From Anaeramoeba ignava BMAN (taxonomy: Eukaryota > Protista > Anaeramoebae): a stretch of 64,000 bases of DNA. The stretch lies in the NCBI GenBank assembly GCA_028826165.1, contig JAPDFW010000016.1, forward strand, positions 1 through 64,000, written 5' to 3'. A model generated the notes under the pieces. It ran no database searches, was not told the DNA's origin, and saw only the letters and a list, made by a program, of their open reading frames with translations. Of the stretch, positions 53,179 through 64,000 are shown piece after piece (position 1 is the stretch's first letter; each line of letters opens with the position of its first letter). Made by a program: the position numbers and the translations under genes.

Positions 53179-53514
53179 TAAAATGATTTGCTAGTTTTTT
53201 TTTTTTTTTTAAATTGAGAAAAGTGGCAAAAATTAAAAAAAAAAGAAAAATGAATTTTTTATTTTTTATTTTTGATCTGTTTTTTTTTTATATTTTTATT
53301 TTGAAACGTGAGTTTTTGTTTTATTTAAGTAAATTTAAAAAATAAATTGTAAATTCTATTTAAAAATTTAATTCAATTCAATTTTATTTTATTTTATTTT
53401 GGGGTAAATTTTTGAATTATGAATTTTTTAATTGACAAAAAAAAAAAAAAAAAATTAAAAGGAAAAAAAAAGGAATTTTGTTTTGAATCTTTAATTATTT
53501 TAATTTGTTTTAAA

Positions 53515-55080
53515 ACAATAAATTTGTTTATAAATTTTATTATAAATTTTATTATAAATTTGTTTATAAATATGTTTATAAATTTCTTTCATTTTTTGTT
53601 TATAAATTTGTTAATAAATTTGTTTATAAATTTCCTTCATTTTGTGTTTATAAATTTGTTTATAAATTTGTTTATAAATTTGTTTATAAATTTTATTATA
53701 ATTTTGTTAATAAATTTGTTTATAAATTTGTTTATAAATTTGTTTATAAATTTGTTTATAAATTTGTTTATAAATTTGTTTATAAATTTTATTATAATTT
53801 TGTTTATAAATTTGTTTATAAATTTGTTTATAAATTTTATTATAAATTTGTTTATAAATTTGTTTATAAATTTGTTTATAAATTTCCTTCATTTTGTTTA
53901 TAAATTTGTTTATAAATTTGTTTATAAATTTGTTTATAAATTTGTTTATAAATTTGTTTATAAATTTGTTTATAAATTTGTTTATAAATTTGTTTATAAA
54001 TTTGTTTATAAATTTGTTTATAAATTTGTTTATAAATTTGTTTATAAATTTGTTTATAAATTTGTTTATAAATTTGTTTATAAATTTGTTTATAAATTTG
54101 TTTATAAATTTGTTTATAAATTTGTTTATAAATTTGTTTATAAATTTGTTTATAAATTTGTTTATAAATTTGTTTATAAATTTGTTTATAAATTTGTTTA
54201 TAAATTTGTTTATAAATTTGTTTATAAATTTGTTTATAAATTTGTTTATAAATTTGTTTATAAATTTGTTTATAAATTTGTTTCATTTTGTGTTTATAAA
54301 TTTGTTTATAAATTTGGTTATAAATTTGTTAATAAATTTCCTTCATTTTGTGTTAATAAATTTCCTTCATTTTATGTTTATAAATTTGTTTATAAATTTG
54401 TTTCATTTGTGGTTATAAATTTCCTTCATTTTATGTTTATAAATTTGTTTATAAATTTGTTTATAAATTTGTTTATAAATTTGTTAATAAATTTGTTTAT
54501 AAATTTGTTTATAAATTTGTTTATAAATTTGTTAATAAATTTGTTAATAAATTTGTTTCTAAATTTGTTTATAAATTTGTTTATAAATTTGTTTATAAAT
54601 TTGTTTCATTTTGTGTTTATAAATTTGTTTATAAATTTGTTTCTAAATTTGTTTATAAATTTGTTTATAAATTTGTTTATAAATTTGTTTCATTTTGTGT
54701 TTATAAATTTCTTTCATTTTTTGTTAATAAATTTGTTTATAAATTTCCTTCATTTTTTGTTAATAAATTTGTTAATAAATATGTTTATAAATTTGTTTAT
54801 AAATTTGTTTATAAATTTCTTATTTTTTCTTAATAAATTTCCTTCATTTTATGTTAATAAATTTGTTTATAAATTTGTTAATAAATTTCCTTCATTATAT
54901 GTTTATAAATTTGTTTATAAATTTGTTTCATTTTGTGTTTATAAATTTCTTTCATTTTATGTTTATAAATTTGTTTATAAATTTGTTTCATTTTGTGTTT
55001 ATAAATTTGTTTATAAATTTGTTTATAAATTTCTTTCATTTTTTCTTAATAAATTTGTTAATAAATGTGTTTATAAATGT
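53515..55080. repeat. 12-bp minisatellite (TTTGTTTATAAA)n
   Basis: Perfect core at about 53895-54280 with degenerate flanks; lies between divergent genes. Confidence 0.93.
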
Positions 55081-55171
55081 TTTATTTTATGTTTATTGAA
55101 AAAAAAAATGAAAAAAAAATTTTTTTTTTAAATTTTTTTTAATTTTCATTTTTTTCATTCATAAAAAAAAA

Positions 55172-58100
55172 ATGAAAAATATTCAAAAAGAAAAAATTCT
55201 AATAGAATACAAACCAAAACAAATTCCTCGATTAGCTTCAATGCTAAGAGTGTTTCTGCACAACAAAAAAGAAGAAACAAATGAAAATCAAGAAAAAAAC
55301 GAAGATGAAAAAAAAACAATTGGATTTGATTATGAAAACGAACAGACAAAAAGAACAAAAAGATTCCAACAGAAAAAAAGCATTGAAGAAACAGTGCGGT
55401 TTAAAACCAACGCAGTTGAGCTGAAATGGAGCACTTTTTCACGCGAAATCAATGAATCAGAAACTCAAGGAATTCGAAAACAATTCAATAATTTTTTGGA
55501 ATTAATTTCTAAAATAACGCAAGTAAAAACTCAGGAAGGACTGCATAAAACTGCATACCAAGTTTACCAAACGTTGGTTCGTTTGGATCTCTCAAAAAAA
55601 GAAAAACTCGAAACCCTTATAATTGGATTTGGAAATGAATGGCAGGAAAAAGTTAATTTTTTCGATTTATTTGATTTGGCTCAATTTTTAACAAATTGGA
55701 GAATAAAAGCAATCGATGATTCTAATAGAAATGGAGGCTTTGTTTCTCATTCTTTTCTTCCCAAAAAACAACCTCCGCAAAAAAGTACTTATCTTATTGA
55801 AAAACAAAGAGAACGTGATAAAAGAGAACATCAAGAATCAAAAATTAAAGAAAAAAAACAAAAGCAAGAAAAACAAAAAGAAGAACAAGATAAAATCCAA
55901 AAAAAAGAAAGAAAGGAAAAGAAAAAACAAAGGAAACTCGATAGAAAGCAAAAGAAAATAAGCAAAGAAATTGATGAGGAAAAAGAAATGGAAAATAAGA
56001 AAAGAAACAAAAACAATAAGAAATGGAATTTTAAAAAAGATCAAAATCAAAATCAAGATCAAAATCAAAATCAAAATCAAGATAATTTAACTGATACTGA
56101 AGATAATGAAAATATTAATGAAGATGATCAAAATATTAATGAGAATGATGAAAAACCAAAAGAAAAACCTAAAAAACCCAAAAAACACAAAAGAAAAATT
56201 GAGGAAGAAATACCAGAAGTAAAACCCCATTTCCATCAAGAATTTGGAATGGGATTCATTTTTTCAGACTTAAATTCCTATCTTGAAAATGTGAATCTTG
56301 AAGAAGAACGAAAAAAAATCAAAGAATTGCAAGACGAAATCAATCTTCACACTCCCAAAATCAAGGAGCTCAAATTCTCAAAAGCAATTCTTTGGCTCAA
56401 GCAGAATTTATATCAATCTTTTCCAGATAATGAGAGCAACACTGATATTATACTTTCTGTTTGCAAATTGATATGTTCAAAATCAACAAATGAACAAATT
56501 CAAAATGAAATTTTCGATCTTATTGGCGATTTTGATTTAACACAGATTATCATCCATAATAGAGCAAAATTTATTCGGGAATCGATTCATCTCGATTTAC
56601 TTCGTAATCCTTCAGTCATTTTGGATGAAAATTTTCTTGAGGATGAATTCAAATTCGTCAAATCATCCGGAATTATAAAAACAAAACAAGACCAAGAATT
56701 ACTTAAATTTGCCTCAAAATTAGAGAAAAAGGAGCAAATGACAAAAAATCAAAAGAAATCAAAACGCCAAAAATTGCAACAACAAATTGAAGAATTATAT
56801 GGGAATCAACCGCTTCAAATGGAAAGTCCAGTTATTGTTAAAAAACTTGGGAAACGAACAAAAAAACGGAAACCAAAACAAACAAAATCAGTTCGAGAAA
56901 CTGCAAAATGGGTTTCTGATCTATCTCAATATTTACAGAGTTTAGGTTATTCTCAACTTAACAAAGCCGTTACTCTTCCTAAAGGAACAATTCGTAGGAG
57001 TACTGATCAATATGATAATGTTTCTATTCCTGCTCCTAAAATTAAACCTATTCCAAAAGATCGTTTAGTTCCTATTAAAAAATTTGATAAGTGGGCTCGC
57101 CCTGCTTTTGAAGGTTTTACTCATCTTAATGTTATTCAAACAGAAGTTTTTGAAACTGCTTATAATACAAATGAGAATCTTTTAATTTGTGCACCAACTG
57201 GAGCAGGTTAATCCAAAAAATATATAAAAATATTTAAATTCAAAAAAATATTTAAATTCAAAAAAATATTTAAATTCAAAAAATATTTAAATTCAAAACA
57301 ATATTTAAATTCAAAAAATATTTAAATTCAAAAAATATTTAAATTCAAAAAAATATTTAAATTCAAAAAATATTTAAATTCAAAAAAATATTTAAATTCA
57401 AAAAAATTTATATTTATATTTATATTTATATTTATAAAATTCAAAACAATATTTAAATTTAAAAAATATTTAAATTCAAAACAATATTTAATTAAAAAAT
57501 ATTTATATTCAAAAAAATATTTAAATTCAAAAAATATTTAATTAAAAAATATTTAAATTCAAAAAAATATTTAAATTCAAAACAATATTTAATTAAAAAA
57601 TATTTAAATTTAAAAAATATTTAAATTCAAAACAATATTTAAATTCAAAACAATATTTAAATTTAAAAAATATTTAAATTCAAAAAAATTTAAATTCAAA
57701 AATATTTAAATTCAAAACAATATTTAAATTCAAAAAAATATTTAAATTCAAAACAATATTTAAATTTAAAAAAATATTTATATTTATATTTATATTTATA
57801 TTTTAAATATTTAGGAAAAAGTCTCCCTAATAACGCAATAGTTTATACTCCAAAAGGCCCAAAAAGAAATGGTGATCTAAAACCAAATGATTTTGTTTGC
57901 ACTCCTGATGGCAAAATATCCAAAATTTTACAAATATTTCCTCAAGGAATTTTAAACATATACCAAATAACTTTCCAAGATGGTGATAAAGTAGAATGCA
58001 GTGGAGATCATTTATGGTTTATAAATGATAAAGCAAAATCAACTTCGAATATTTACACAACAAAACAAATCATACAAAGACTTAAAGAAACTAACTCTCA

Positions 58101-61100
58101 AATAACAATTAATACTCCTAATCCCTTGAAATTTCAACACAAATCATGCAAAATACACCCATATTTAATGGCCATTTTATTCAACTCAAAATTGTTTTAT
58201 AATAAAAACACTTTTAAACTTTATTTTAATTACTCAAGTGGTGATCCATTTATTGACAATAAAGTTTTTCTTCATCTTCAAATCCTTATGAAATATCAAA
58301 ATTGCAAACTTCAAAAACAAACTTCAAATGATTGGATATTATCTTCTTCTTTGGAATCTATTCACCAAAATTCAAATTTTCTGAATATGATTGATTATCT
58401 TTTTGAAATTGGATTTTTAGAGAAAGAAATTAAAAATAGAAACATTCCTGATGAATATATTTTCAATACAAAAATAATAAGAAAACAATTTCTTCAAGCA
58501 ATTTTGGATCAAAATGGCAAATTCTTCAACCAAAATCAACTTGGATTTTATTCTCTTTCAAAACACTTTGCAAATCAAATTAAACCCATAATTCTATCAT
58601 TAGGAGGATTATTAAACATCACAAAAGAACCAAGAGATGAATCAGGTTTAGGAGATTTATTCAAATGTATTATTGAAGGAATTGATGCTAAAATATTACT
58701 TCATTTCAGAGAAAATTTGAATGGAAAAAATGCAAAATTCGAAAAATGCGAAAGAGTTATCAAGAAAATCAAGAAAATAAGAAAAGACGAATGCACATGT
58801 ATTCTTATCGATCATCCCGAGCATTTATATCTAACAAACAATTTTGTGGTTACACACAATACAAACATTGCATTAATGGCAATTTTGCATGAGATTAAAA
58901 ACCATTTAATAAGCCCAAATATCTTGAATATTCTGAAAACAAAGGAATTCAAAATTATATACATTGCACCAATGAAAGCGCTTGCATCAGAACAAGTCTC
59001 AAATTTTTCAAAACGTCTCGAGTATTTAAAGTTCAAAGTAAAAGAACTGACTGGAGATATGCAACTAACAAAAAAAGAAATTGAAGAAACACAAATGATT
59101 ATAACAACACCCGAAAAATGGGATGTAACAACTCGCAAAACTGGAGGAATATCAATCACAGACATTGTAACCTTGATAATTATTGATGAAATCCATCTAC
59201 TTAATGATGATAGAGGATCTGTGATTGAAAGTTTAGTTGCGAGAATCATGAGAAAAATTGAGATGTCTCAAAGAATGATCCGAATTGTTGGTCTTTCAGC
59301 AACATTACCAAATTATCAAGATGTTGCAGAATTTTTAAGAGTGAATGAAAGAGGTTTATTTCATTTTGATTATACTTACAGACCCATTCCTTTATCTCAA
59401 GATTTTTATGGATTTCGAGGTGAAAACCAATCTTATGTTACAAATCTCATGAATAAAAAGGCTTTTGAATTAATAACACAAGTTCTTCAAGACGATTTAC
59501 AAGCATTAATTTTTGTGACAAGTAGAAACGAAACAGTCAATTTAGGTTTACAATTTATGAGAATGGTAGAAAAACAAGGATTAGTAACACTTTTTCAACC
59601 AAAGAGAACAGAATCTTTTCGAATAATCCAAAAAAATGTTGAAAAATCATCAAATTCTGAATTGAAAAAATTATTTAATTTTTGTAAATAATTATTTAAA
59701 AATTATTTAATATTTATTTAATATTTATTTAATAATTATTTAAAAATTATTTAATATTTATTTAATATTTATTTAATATTTATTTAATATTTATTTAATA
59801 TTTATTTAATATTTATTTAATATTTATTTAATATTTATTTAATATTTATTTAATAATTATTTAATATTTATTTAATATTTATTTAATATTTATTTAATAA
59901 TATTTATTTAATATTTATTTAATATTTATTTAATATTTATTTAATAATTATTTATTTAATATTTATTTAATATTTATTTAATATTTAATATTTATTTAAT
60001 ATTAAATTTACATTTTTAAAGCTATCGGCATTCATCATGCAGGAATGCTTCGCTCAGATAGAAATTTAATGGAAAAACTATTTAAAAGTGGTCACATTAA
60101 GGTTTTAATATCAACAGCAACATTATCATGGGGTGTTAATCTTCCATCACATACAGTTATTATAAAAGGAACCCAAATTTATAAAGATGGTAACTTTGTA
60201 GAATATGATCAGCTCAATATTGCACAAATGTGCTTCACAGCAAATACAAAAGTATTGCTTAGTAATGGAAAATGGGAAACAATTAGTGATATTGTTAATC
60301 TTGGAATTGGTGAATCAGTTTTATCTTTTTGCAAGAAAACAGGTCAATTAGTTCCAAAAAAAATAGTGAATAGATATAAAAATGGAAAAAGAAAAGTTTG
60401 CAGTTTTGTCTTTAAAAACAAAAATGAAATTTCTTGCACAAAAGATCATAAAATACTTTCATCAATCGATTCCAAAAACGGGAAAAAATTCAAATGGATC
60501 AAAATTGGGGAATTATTAATAAAACAAAAGGAGGAGGAAGGAAAACAAACAGAATTCTCAGCAATATCATTAGCAAAAACAATGAAAAAAGCAAATTTAA
60601 CATCAACAAAAATAGAAAAAGCAAATTTAATTTCAAAAGAAAAAAAACGAATTGAATTTGTTTATGATCTTGAAATTGAAGACACACATAATTACATTGT
60701 AAACGAAAACTTGTGTCTGATTGCTCACAATTGCGGAAGAGCTGGACGTCCTCAATACGACACTTCTGGACACAGCATTATTCTAACAACCCATGACCAA
60801 ATTGATAGATATGTTAATATGGTGATTCATAAAAAGCCTATTGAGAGTCGGTTCCAAGAAAATTTGCCCGACAATCTCAACGCAGAAGTAATATTAGGCA
60901 CAGTAACAGATGTTAGAGAAGCCTCTATATGGTTGCAATACAGCTATTTAATGGTTCGAGCATTGAAAGCACCATCAAATTATGGGATCGGTTGGGAAGA
61001 AAAAGTCAACGATCCAACTCTCAGTGAATTCCGAAGAAATATCATCACACAAACAGCAAAAATCCTAACCGAAGCAAAAATAATCCGCTATGATGAAATT

Positions 61101-64000
61101 TCGGAGACTTTATCCCCAACAGATTTGGGAAGAGTTGCTAGTCATTATTATATTAAATACCAAACAATCAAAATGTTTAATGAAAAACTAAAAAGTACAA
61201 TGAATGATGACAAAGTCTTTGAAATGGTCAGTCTTTCTTCGGAATTCGAAAGACTGAAAGTAAGAGAGGAAGAGATCCCCGAATTGGAAGAGTTAGCAGA
61301 AACAACATGCCCAATCAAAGTTATTGGCGGATGCGAACAATCTTATGGGAAAGCAAATATTCTATTGCAATCTTATATTTCACGAACAAGATTGAATACA
61401 TTTTCGTTAATTTCAGATCAGAACTATGTTTCCCAAAACGCAGTAAGAATCCTTCGCGCTGCGTTTGAAATTAGTCTCAACAAAGGATGGAGTTCAACAG
61501 CTTTAAGAGTACTCACAATTTACAAAATGGTTGAAAGAAAAATATGGAACTTTCAAAATTCACTGATGCAAATTGAAGGCATTTCGCCGGGAATTATCAA
61601 AAAATTGGATCGGAATAATTTAACAATTGACAAACTAAGTGATATGGATGCTGGCGAGATTGGATATCTTTTGCGCAGTCCAGCTTTAGGTCACAGCATT
61701 AAGCAAAAAATTGAATATTTTCCAGTTATTGATATGGATATTGAAGTTCAGCCAATTACGCGTTCAGTTTTAAGACTAAAACTTAATATTCATCCTCTAT
61801 TTCAATGGAACGGAGGAATTCATGGCGATTCTCAACCCTGGTGGATTTGGGTTGAAGATTTTAATTCAGAGCATATTTATCATTCAGAGTTATTTATTTT
61901 AACTCGAAAAAATCTTAATCAAGAACATAATATCACTTTTACTATCCCTATTTTTGATCCTTTACCTCCTCAATATTATGTCCGCATTGCTTCGGATTTC
62001 TTTGTTGGTGCTGAACAAATTTTCCCTGTTTCTTTTAAGCATTTAATTCTTCCTGAACATTATATTCCTCATACAGAATTACTTAATTTGATACCTCTTC
62101 CTATTGATGCTTTAAAAAATGAAAAATATCAAAGTTTATTTTCATTTACTCATTTTAATCCAATTCAAACACAAGTATTTTTTACTTTATATCATACAAA
62201 TGTAAGTATTTTTAAAGTATTTTTAAAATATTTATTTATAAAATTTATTTAAAATATTTATTATAAAATTTATTTAAAATATTTATTTAAAATATTTATT
62301 TAATAATATTTATTTATTAATATTTATTTAAAATATTTATTTAAAATATTTATTTATAATATTTATTTAATAATATTTATTTAAAATATTTATTTAATAA
62401 TATTTATATAATATTTATTTAAAATATTTATTTATTAATATTTATTAAAATATTTATTTATTAATATTTATTTATAATATTTAATCTTGATTTAAAAAGA
62501 AAAATGTTTTATTGGGAGCTCCAACTGGTTCTGGAAAAACAATTGCAGCTGAAATTGCTATATTTAGAGTATTCAATGAATATCCAAATAAAAAAACAAT
62601 TTATATTGCACCATTAAAAGCACTTGTTAGAGAAAGAATGAAAGATTGGAAAGAAAGATTTGTTAAGAAACTTGGGAAATCAGTTGTTGAATTAACAGGA
62701 GATGTTATGCCAGATAGAATGGCTTTGAAAAAAGCTGATGTTGTTGTTTCTACTCCTGAAAAATGGGATGGTATTAGTAGAAGTTGGAAATCAAGAAGTT
62801 ATGTTAAAGATGTTGCTTTGATTGTTATTGATGAAATTCATCTTCTTGGTTCTGATCGTGGTCCTATTTTGGAAATGATTGTTTCTCGAATGAGGTAATT
62901 AGAAAATGAATTTAAAATTTAGAAATAAATTTAAAATTTAGAAATCAATTTATAATTTAAAAATAAATTTAAATTTAAAATGAATTTAAAAATCAATTTA
63001 AAATTTAGAAATAAATTTATAATTTAAAATTTAGAAATCAATTTAAAATTTAGAAATGAATTTAAAATTTAAAAATAAATTTATAATTTAAAAATCAATT
63101 TAAAATTTAAAAATGAATTTAAAAATAAATTTATAATTTAAAATTTAAAAATCAATTTAAAATTTATAATTTAAAAATCAATTTAAAATTTATAATTAAA
63201 AAATAATTAAAAATAAATTTATAATTTAAAATCACAAAGATATATCGCAAGCCAAACAAACTCAGAATCTAGATTTATAGGATTATCAACAGCGTTGGCA
63301 AATGCCGCAGATATTGCACAATGGTTAGATGTTGACAGCTCAGGAATGTTTAATTTTAGGCCATCAGTTCGACCAGTTCCATTAGAAACTCACATTCAAG
63401 GATTCTCAGGAAAACATTACTGTCCAAGAATGGATACAATGAATAAACCTGCTTATCAATCAATAAAACTTCACTCATCATCAAAACCAACCTTGATTTT
63501 TGTTTCTTCAAGAAGACAAACAAGATTAACTGCATTTGCTTTAATTTCTTTAAGTGTTGCAAATCTTACTCCAAATGAATTCCAAAGAATGACTGAGGAG
63601 GAAATGAATGTAATTTTGCCAAAAATCAGAGATAAAAATTTAAAGCATACTTTGGAATTTGGTATCGGTTTGCATCACGGAGGTTTATCTACATCTGATC
63701 GTAAAATTGTTGAAAATTTGTTTGCAAAGGAAAAAATTCAATTGTTAGTTTCAACAAGTACTCTTGCTTGGGGTATAAATTTACCAGCACATCTTGTTGT
63801 AATCAAAGGAACTGAGTTTTATGATGCAAAAACTAGAAAATATGTTGATTTCCCAATCACAGATGTGCTTCAAATGTGTGTTGATGAAAATTCACCTATT
63901 TTAATCAAATCCCAAAATGGATCTTTATTTAAAAAGGCAAAAAATTTGAATTTGGGTGATTTTGTTTGTGGAATTGATTACAATAACAAGATTAATTGTG
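55172..64000 (+). CDS. ASCC3: ASCC3/Slh1 Ski2-like tandem-cassette helicase precursor with three inteins (3' partial); exons 55172-57206, 57815-59683, 60022-62201, 62500-62894, 63240->64000
   Basis: After removing introns and inteins: [12 protein letters not shown]|[50 protein letters not shown]|[10 protein letters not shown], Sec63 region, second cassette [46 protein letters not shown]. These intact second-cassette motifs favour ASCC3/Slh1 over Brr2. Confidence 0.93.
57207..57814 (+). repeat. ASCC3 intron 1, ~18-19-bp ATATTTAAATTCAAAAA(A) repeats
   Basis: GTTAAT donor at 57207, TTTAG acceptor at 57814, phase 1 within the last Gly codon of APTGAG. Confidence 0.88.
57820..58860 (+). mobile_element. 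Intein 1 (347 aa, Ser1...His-Asn/Thr+1) in Walker A of cassette 1; class-3 W-C-T signature; degenerate LAGLIDADG endonuclease
   Basis: GK|[55 protein letters not shown] ... [24 protein letters not shown]|TNIALMAIL. Removal restores APTGAGKT. Confidence 0.93.
59684..60021 (+). repeat. ASCC3 intron 2, (TATTTATTTAA)n
   Basis: GTAAAT..AAG; the join gives [13 protein letters not shown]. Confidence 0.85.
60231..60731 (+). mobile_element. Intein 2 (167-aa class 1 mini-intein, Cys1...His-Asn/Cys+1) in motif VI of cassette 1
   Basis: AQM|[57 protein letters not shown]|[10 protein letters not shown]. Confidence 0.95.
63877..64000 (+). mobile_element. Intein 3 (N-terminal part only) in motif VI of cassette 2
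   Basis: [10 protein letters not shown]|[32 protein letters not shown]: block A and N2 pattern (C1..K.LxxGDxV) where xGRAGRP should follow; truncated by the window end. Confidence 0.85.

Follow-up and report, generated by a model that had tools for sequence, protein, structure and literature searches.

A class 3-signature intein with a serine at residue 1 in the P-loop of an ASCC3-type helicase gene of Anaeramoeba ignava

In the stretch of 64,000 nucleotides analysed here (the window), the forward strand carries a gene for an ASCC3/Slh1-type helicase that is interrupted by an intron and an intein lying almost side by side. Its first exon (55172–57206), delimited from the open reading frame and the sequence, encodes the N-extein and ends with ICAPTGA and the first base of the last glycine codon of GAG; the low-complexity N-terminal part of the exon gave no match in the Pfam search. 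A phase-1 GT–AG intron of 608 nt (57207–57814; GT at 57207–57208, AG at 57813–57814) was predicted from the sequence and has a G+C content of about 5.6% and A+T repeats of about 20 nt, in a genome with about 80% A+T (80.65% for BMAN). Removal of the intron brings GAGK back into frame. Its end is separated from the start of the intein by 5 nt, the last of the N-extein (57815–57819), of which "ga" completes the glycine codon and "aaa" encodes the Walker A lysine, residue −1. Downstream of the intein, the C-extein exon (58861–59688) encodes the DEAD/RecA1 domain (Pfam DEAD, 6.6e-22) and begins with Thr+1, the Walker A threonine. Searching the exons one by one rather than as the joined spliced protein, we found the solved relatives of the C-extein to rank in the order ASCC3 (8alz_B, E = 9.8e-118), SLH1 and Brr2, and both Pfam and the solved-structure matches indicate that the helicase motifs 3' of the intein are intact. 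The insertion site is the Walker A motif GAGKTN of the first helicase cassette, between its lysine and threonine, so the preliminary description was right to place the intein in the P-loop of a eukaryotic nuclear gene. Within the 64-kb window, the ASCC3 gene carries three inteins, two of which share the motif VI site, one per cassette. Prokaryotic contamination was ruled out because the ASCC3 host gene has introns.

The P-loop intein is complete and occupies 57820–58860 of the forward strand, 347 amino acids from Ser1 to Asn347, as delimited by the translation, database relatives, alignments and an AlphaFold2 model. The translation of 57817–58890 opens with the lysine and SLPNNAIVY, passes through ECSGDHLWF and leaves the intein into TNIALM with zero stops; this is exactly the extent proposed in the preliminary description, and the strings ECSGDHLW, ECTCILID and VVTHN that it quoted are all present. 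The N-terminal half of the HINT domain (approximately residues 1–104; 57820–58131) was assigned from the secondary structure of the model and alignment to gp41-1, Msm DnaB-1 and Mch DnaB-1, and contains block A (SLPNN) and block B (ECSGDHLW), the latter with Ser61 at B:7, His64 at B:10 (58009–58011) and Trp66 at B:12 (58015–58017). The serine at B:7 makes the motif SxxH instead of TxxH, and the threonine is absent from block B as had been noted. The C-terminal half (approximately residues 310–347; 58747–58860), assigned from alignments, contains Cys325, Cys327 (F:4; 58798–58800) and His335 in block F and Thr345 (G:5), His346 and Asn347 in block G (58852–58860), followed by Thr+1. The earlier assignment of a cysteine to F:4 holds for the second of the two cysteines in ECTC, since Cys327 pairs with Cys118 of Msm DnaB-1 in the HMMER alignment and does not vary in any of the 85 aligned relatives; His64, Trp66, Thr345, His346 and Asn347 are likewise the same in all 85. 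A boundary shift making Ser1 the Ser/Thr of the P-loop was rejected because the junction of Asn347 with the threonine gives back the canonical GAGKTN.

The match to Pfam Intein_splicing (PF14890) was below threshold (24 bits, cut-off 35.8). The AlphaFold2 model of the intein has a mean pLDDT of 94.1 and shows an intein with a LAGLIDADG fold, for which Foldseek retrieved inteins bearing homing endonucleases as well as the class 3 DnaB-1 mini-inteins at an rmsd of about 2 Å. The segment has the four blocks (A, B, F and G), ends in His–Asn, is followed by a nucleophile at +1, has a predicted HINT fold and lies in frame within a conserved motif of its host; on these grounds of sequence and predicted structure it is confirmed as a real intein, far beyond what chance would give.

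A search yielded 10,514 database relatives, the top ones at E = 5e-65, and we analysed the best 150 proteins, which together hold 183 inteins. W-C-T inteins, with the combination of tryptophan, cysteine and threonine that marks class 3, were present in all 150 of these proteins: HxW was found in 182 of the 183 inteins, the block F cysteine in all 183, a THN ending in 179, and threonine or serine at +1 in 178, and the insertion follows a lysine in 143. The ASCC3 intein has the same signature, as originally recognized: Trp66, two residues past His64, aligns at B:12 with Trp67 of Msm DnaB-1, Cys327 takes position F:4, and Thr345 takes G:5 with a threonine at +1. Residue 1 departs from the original definition in the 2010 class 3 paper, which takes in a non-nucleophilic residue at this position, whereas here it is serine; the same paper counted those W-C-T inteins that begin with Ser1 or Cys1 among its open cases, and later class 3 publications describe the N-terminal nucleophile as "not required". 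A phylogeny, computed as a quick LG+G4 tree without a class 1 outgroup, places the intein and its eukaryotic relatives inside the class 3 group, nested among W-C-T inteins of prokaryotes and phages, and the proposed phage or bacterial type is borne out. The assignment to class 3 is based on signature and descent rather than on a demonstrated mechanism.

A point against the class 3 reading is that, among solved structures, gp41-1, a class 1 intein, scores best by sequence, with E = 4.8e-7 compared with 2.5e-4 for Msm DnaB-1. This cyanophage-like mini-intein (6qaz) is the best solved match over blocks A–B and shares the THN end, but it has Cys1, phenylalanine at B:12 and aspartate at F:4; W-C-T grafted onto gp41-1 did not result in class 3 splicing (PMC7664689). 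The mycobacterial DnaB-1 (DnaBi1) mini-inteins (Msm, Mle and Mch; 6bs8, 6rix) are also inserted in Walker A between GK and S/T, have a +1 hydroxyl residue shared by the P-loop and splicing, and have the PEHLYL block F and THN end in common with the ASCC3 intein. Cys327, His64 and Trp66 pair in the HMMER alignment with Cys118, His65 and Trp67 of Msm DnaB-1 (6bs8), the documented F:4, B:10 and B:12 residues (PMC5222942), and the His/Trp/Cys/Thr set 65/67/118/137 of Msm DnaB-1 is equivalent to 64/66/327/345 here. The mycobacterial inteins reside in bacterial hosts and have Ala1, aspartate at B:7 and no endonuclease domain, whereas the ASCC3 intein combines Ser1 with serine at B:7, has a LAGLIDADG domain in degenerate form and carries an additional cysteine, Cys325, two residues before F:4. 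The closest database relatives, with 29–37% identity over the full length, are the class 3 prototype in DnaB of mycobacteriophage Bethlehem and the class 3 inteins in the P-loops of phage and bacterial PhoH, terminase and AAA proteins, which share W-C-T, Thr/Ser+1 and a LAGLIDADG insert; they have Pro1 or Ala1 in AQPLD and intact GDG and DxDG, whereas the eukaryotic copies have SLxN and dead motifs.

The endonuclease domain (approximately residues 105–309; 58132–58746), identified from alignment columns and Foldseek, has a LAGLIDADG-type homing-endonuclease fold, and its Foldseek matches include PI-SceI, TliVMA and I-DmoI. Active LAGLIDADG motifs each end in an acidic residue, which is not the case here: motif 1 reads LFNSK in place of LLGDG of the relatives and motif 2 reads LDQNG in place of LMDTDG, and Pfam LAGLIDADG had no match above cut-off in the intein. 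In the alignment, the catalytic acids of both motifs are missing from this intein and from all the other copies in the genome. With both acids lost, the copies are predicted to be fixed passengers now, unable to home with an endonuclease of their own. The degenerate endonuclease, the low Pfam score and the fact that other copies of the intein in the genome (C103 and part of C113) are broken by stops could also suggest an intein that has decayed and lost splicing, in which case cassette 1 of this ASCC3 would be inactive. We find this hardly credible given the open frame of 347 codons, the preservation of all splicing residues including His335 and His346–Asn347, the intact helicase motifs downstream and the confident AlphaFold2 model.

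The genome contains at least 12 P-loop inteins related to the ASCC3 copy, their other hosts being kinesins, dynein, DEAH helicases and SNF2 proteins. All of the 12 or more copies are inserted between the lysine and threonine of GxGKT, and 11 of 12 start with Ser-Leu. The Ser1 copies of this genome and its sister genome form one clade with an SH-aLRT support of 100 inside the W-C-T inteins of prokaryotes and phages. The nearest sequences to the ASCC3 intein are the paralogs in its own genome, with identities up to 41%, and copies within the eukaryotic clade are 28–48% identical to each other. The GC3 of the intein (18.7%) is close to that of the host exons (19.2–19.6%). These comparisons show the intein to descend from bacterial and phage P-loop inteins, one lineage of which entered this eukaryote and came to occupy the P-loops of unrelated ATPases (kinesins, dynein, DEAH helicases and ASCC3). 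Judged by their sequences, the copies of the eukaryotic clade are old, combining 28–48% identity with a host-like composition. The closest non-eukaryotic relatives reside in the P-loops of PhoH and AAA ATPases typical of phages and bacteria, as would be expected if a phage or bacterial P-loop intein had recently been transferred, independently, straight into the ASCC3 gene. Such an event appears very unlikely when the nearest sequences are paralogs of the same genome, the clade support is 100, GC and GC3 are the same as in the host exons, and the endonuclease has lost its catalytic residues as in every paralog. Of the lateral acquisition proposed in the preliminary description, the ultimate origin stands, but a separate entry into the ASCC3 gene does not agree with the fully supported Ser1 clade and the host-like composition.

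Taken together, the best explanation, which we regard as likely, is a class 3 intein in the ASCC3 P-loop that belongs to a single spread lineage and is predicted to be splicing-competent, with Cys327 acting first. The precursor would be unable to bind ATP properly before the intein has removed itself. Cys327 at F:4 would most likely attack the peptide bond between Lys(−1) and Ser1, giving a branched thioester at block F; the N-extein would then be transferred to Thr+1, and cyclization of Asn347 would release the intein and regain the Walker A GAGKT. Ser1 would probably be a tolerated or auxiliary residue and not an obligate nucleophile. Residue 1 is alanine in 120 of the 183 inteins from the best 150 of the 10,514 relatives, and the tree requires at least 13 changes in the nucleophile state of this position; because of this, Ser1 is probably labile or derived, and the earlier wording that it had been "retained" probably has the direction wrong. 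Nor is the combination of Ser1 and W-C-T unusual by sequence, as 21 of the 183 closest inteins (about 11%) have serine or cysteine at residue 1, all but one of these with W-C-T.

The conservation of the N-terminal residues nevertheless raises another reading, that the eukaryotic clade, while keeping a class 3 scaffold, has switched to class 1-like splicing initiated by Ser1 or employs the two routes side by side, with Cys327 as the coordinating F:4 residue or a second nucleophile. All nine distinct sequences of the eukaryotic clade have Ser1, Leu2 and Ser61 (B:7), although they are only 28–48% identical and no more than 30 of 347 columns are invariant among them, and this set of residues would make a class 1-like N–O acyl shift chemically possible. 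Block A, moreover, has been changed in the alignment from AQPLD to SL(R/P)N(S/N). If the reading were true, the Ser1 clade would be a natural hybrid, with a class 1-like N-terminal set (Ser1–Leu2 and SxxH) on a class 3 scaffold, and would document the reversal of an intein's mechanistic class following transfer into a eukaryote. On the other hand, Trp66, Cys327 and Thr345 are just as invariant in the nine sequences, at least 13 changes of residue 1 within the class 3 clade are what one expects of a non-essential position, and the class 3 literature requires no N-terminal nucleophile. Among prokaryotic relatives, serine or cysteine at residue 1 goes with serine or threonine at B:7 (13 of 17, compared with 53 of 162 for the others; Fisher P = 8e-4), but with phylogenetically independent pairs the association was no longer significant (3 against 1). 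We therefore consider a switch to Ser1 unlikely and prefer initiation by Cys327.

Class 3 inteins were for a long time believed to occur only in bacteria and phages. Their presence in the P-loops of unrelated ATPases encoded by nuclear genes shows that an intein is able to pass from one gene to another that is not homologous to it, a point made in 2023 by Gallot-Lavallee et al. (PNAS; PMC10710043). Their paper describes Anaeramoeba "cluster 1" class 3 P-loop inteins, which are found in non-homologous nuclear proteins, branch together and have phage relatives, so the surprise initially expressed at a class 3 intein in a eukaryote is no longer warranted. The present intein resembles cluster 1 in its nuclear Anaeramoeba gene, its P-loop insertion and its clustering with other P-loop copies, and the paper lists A. 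ignava ASC1S3 g14419.t1 with three predicted inteins; this window likewise has three inteins in the ASCC3 gene, with two of them at the motif VI site of its two cassettes, in agreement with the Fig. 6A legend of the paper. The intein thus belongs to an already published family, and these matching features make it a candidate for one of the copies reported there. The description of the cluster 1 N-terminal residues as "atypical" in that paper fits poorly with the Ser1 of 11 of 12 copies here, and its main text does not mention that the endonuclease has lost its catalytic acids.

Our analysis adds that Ser1, Leu2 and the B:7 serine show no variation anywhere in the eukaryotic clade, that the endonuclease acids are lost in every copy, and that the base composition of the ASCC3 copy is fully host-like. 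Together, these three features make the eukaryotic clade a natural collection well suited to the question of whether a residue 1 nucleophile matters in a W-C-T intein. Multiple inteins were also observed in dynein of A. ignava BMAN.

The G+C content of the window is about 20%, and an open reading frame running from 55172 on its forward strand ends in ...ICAPTGAG, followed by a stop codon. There the DNA has the borders (GT at 57207–57208, AG at 57813–57814) of a forward-strand intron of 608 nt (57207–57814), made of A+T tandem repeats of about 20 nt and containing 5.6% G+C. These values agree with published BMAN figures of 80.65% A+T overall and 91.9% A+T in introns (PMC11550330). Removal of the intron joins the "g" at 57206 with the "ga" at 57815–57816 into a Gly codon, after which come AAA (Lys) and AGT (Ser, 57820), the latter opening 347 codons without a stop that end in VVTHN (57820–58860, forward strand). 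Once these codons are excised, APTGAGK/TNIALM, a canonical Walker A motif, appears at the insertion site (slash). We searched the exons separately, one by one: the exon downstream of the intein encodes a DEAD/RecA1 domain (Pfam, 6.6e-22) and, among solved structures, comes closest to human ASCC3 (8alz_B, E 9.8e-118), with yeast SLH1 and Brr2 ranking lower. The intron stops just 5 nt 5' of the intein, so that the Walker A codons are broken by both. Gallot-Lavallee et al. 2023 (PMC10710043) propose that introns close to an insertion site block homing, whereas at the ASCC3 P-loop intron and intein coexist. Upstream of the gene, a 570-aa "ORF" of FINL and KFVY repeats (53419–55131, forward strand) was rejected as a gene, being merely A+T-rich tandem repeats in translation.

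The Pfam Intein_splicing model matched the 347-aa insert weakly (24 bits, under the 35.8 cut-off), and an exhaustive HMMER search gave 10,514 relatives at E ≤ 0.001 (top E 5e-65). Locating the intein limits in the best 150 of the 10,514 proteins yielded 183 inteins: block B HxW was found in 182 and the block F Cys in all 183, while 179 ended in THN, 178 were followed by Thr or Ser, and 143 were preceded by Lys, mostly as GxGK. These inteins are carried by PhoH, AAA ATPases and proteins like them, and their LAGLIDADG domains are still recognisable. In an 85-sequence alignment, H64, W66, G262, C327, T345, H346 and N347 were the sole invariant columns. Among solved structures, HMMER aligned the class 3 intein Msm DnaB-1 (6bs8) with the insert, pairing residues 324–347 of the insert with PVRCVEVDNPEHLYLAGPGMVPTHN, Cys327 with Cys118, and His64/Trp66 with His65/Trp67. 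Since positions F:4, B:10 and B:12 have been assigned to these residues in Msm DnaB-1 (PMC5222942), the Trp-Cys-Thr (W-C-T) triplet read by the preliminary description is correctly placed, F:4 being the second Cys of ECTC. AlphaFold2 run on the alignment gave a confident model (mean pLDDT 94.1, pTM 0.92), for which the first Foldseek matches were the endonuclease-bearing inteins TliVMA, PI-SceI and PI-PfuI, followed by I-DmoI over the insert and gp41-1 and class 3 DnaB-1 inteins over the splicing domain, with rmsd of about 2 Å.

The block F pair Cys325-Thr-Cys327 (58792–58800) is invariant across the eukaryote clade, the class 3 P-loop copies starting with Ser-Leu, and its first Cys is shared by just 29 of the 75 relatives from prokaryotes and phages; Cys60 of block B is conserved too. 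In Msm DnaB-1, a regulatory disulfide joins the F:4 Cys to another Cys, and by analogy a redox switch is conceivable in the ASCC3 intein.

The ASCC3 intein, which splits the Walker A motif, has every residue known to be required for class 3 splicing, and these residues are conserved. By the published class 3 pathway (PMC2807308, PMC5222942, PMC6195587), Cys327 would attack the Lys(-1)-Ser1 amide with the aid of His64, Thr345 and Trp66, giving a branched thioester at block F; the N-extein would pass to Thr+1, Asn347 would cyclise with help from His346 and His335, and an O–N shift would restore GAGKT. We regard this Cys327-first route as probable. A route dependent on Ser1, or a dual one, appears unlikely, although S1, L2, S61 (B:7), D63 and C325 are among the 30 of 347 columns invariant in the eukaryote clade: H64, W66, C327 and T345–N347 are likewise among them, making both routes chemically possible. 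A Fisher test associates Ser or Cys at residue 1 with Ser or Thr at B:7 (p 8e-4), but the association fails on independent pairs (3 vs 1). Of the 183 inteins from the best 150 proteins, 120 have Ala at residue 1, 19 Pro, 12 Ser and 9 Cys, and along the tree this position gains or loses a nucleophile at least 13 times, which argues against Ser1 being necessary and against the earlier view of it as "retained".

A six-frame search of the 42.8-Mb assembly that contains the window gave 27 matching pieces, corresponding to at least 12 related inteins, all between GxGK and T in ATPases of different kinds. Besides the ASCC3 copy they comprise two in kinesins (FAYGATGAGK/TYTM), three in DEAH helicases (GSGK/TTQ), one in a GTGK/TQL protein, one in an SNF2 protein (.../TIQTISLL; locus L021, 1501–2619, minus strand; contig C71, 846336–847454), and those of dynein AAA1 (GPAGTGK/TETVK) and AAA3 (GPPGSGK/TMT), each in two or three near-identical copies spread over contigs C35, C92 and C113. 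Eleven of the at least 12 start with SL(R/P)N; the SNF2 copy starts with AQPLD (Ala1), like the majority in bacteria and phages. The dynein heavy-chain regions carrying both inteins (C35, 457582–461547; C92, 277671–281648; C113, 179638–183611) are identical or near-identical in protein sequence and may have arisen by recent duplication or represent uncollapsed haplotigs.

A quick LG+G4 tree of 87 inteins, whose support values are to be read with caution, grouped the Ser1 copies in a single clade (SH-aLRT 100), nested among W-C-T inteins of prokaryotes and phages and including one kinesin intein of another NCBI assembly (GCA_027625915.1). Pairwise identity within the clade is 28–48%, and the composition of the ASCC3 intein (G+C 26.8%, GC3 18.7%) can be taken as equal to that of its flanking exons (29.3%, GC3 19.2–19.6%). 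Together these features draw a picture of one old entry, after which the inteins spread to non-homologous P-loops and have long resided there; they do not fit a fresh transfer into ASCC3. Of the initial interpretation, the signature of class 3 and the lateral ancestry stand, while the stand-alone acquisition by ASCC3 gives way, as does the "retained" Ser1. The SNF2 copy, a class 3 intein of bacterial type, did not group with the Ser1 clade but had a long branch elsewhere in the tree, and it may be a separate acquisition at the insertion site already described for bacterial Snf2 inteins.

The LAGLIDADG motifs of the relatives read ..LLGDG and ..LMD(T/S)DG, against ..ILFNSK and ..ILDQNG in the ASCC3 intein. 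By alignment columns, the catalytic acid is missing from both motifs in every copy of this genome (loci L002, L005, L006, L007, L009, L013, L015 and L021), and four share an Asp-to-Asn change in motif 2. Pfam LAGLIDADG models gave no match to these copies or one below the cut-off; the endonuclease-domain fold is still confidently predicted by AlphaFold2. We infer that the copies cannot now home by themselves, and if the acid loss predates the P-loop spread, a trans-acting endonuclease or another mechanism would be needed.

The class 3 P-loop intein family is already known: Gallot-Lavallee et al. 2023 (PMC10710043) count 103 inteins in BMAN and describe a cluster 1 whose members "appear to be Class 3", all lie in P-loops of unrelated proteins, branch together and have phage links. 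The authors call the N-terminal residues of cluster 1 "atypical", whereas here Ser1 occurs in 11 of at least 12 copies; what remains of interest is that Ser1 and SxxH are fixed and that the endonucleases are dead without exception. They also give ASC1S3 (g14419.t1) three predicted inteins, with related ones at the equivalent site of its two helicase cassettes. The window likewise has three ASCC3 inteins, two of them at motif VI of both cassettes, and a match of its inteins to the published BMAN set is strongly inferred. The cassette 1 motif VI copy is a 167-aa mini-intein (60231–60731, forward strand; NIAQM/CFTANT...LIAHN/CGRAGRP) with Cys1 and Cys+1, an absent endonuclease domain and a Pfam Intein_splicing score of 48.9 bits; the third intein (ITDVLQM/CVDENS...), at the equivalent cassette 2 site, occupies 63877–64000 on the forward strand and extends past the window end. 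The cassette 2 P-loop (62512–62898, forward strand) is without an intein despite having the same GxGK/T target as cassette 1.

Decayed or interrupted P-loop copies lie at C103 385–1282 (L023/L026), C113 182675–183611 (L014/L024) and C68 374472–375423 (L010/L022). Stop codons are present in the C103 copy and in the N-terminal part of the C113 dynein AAA1 copy, and the C68 DEAH-helicase copy is split into two reading frames by a frameshift or small intron inside the endonuclease domain.
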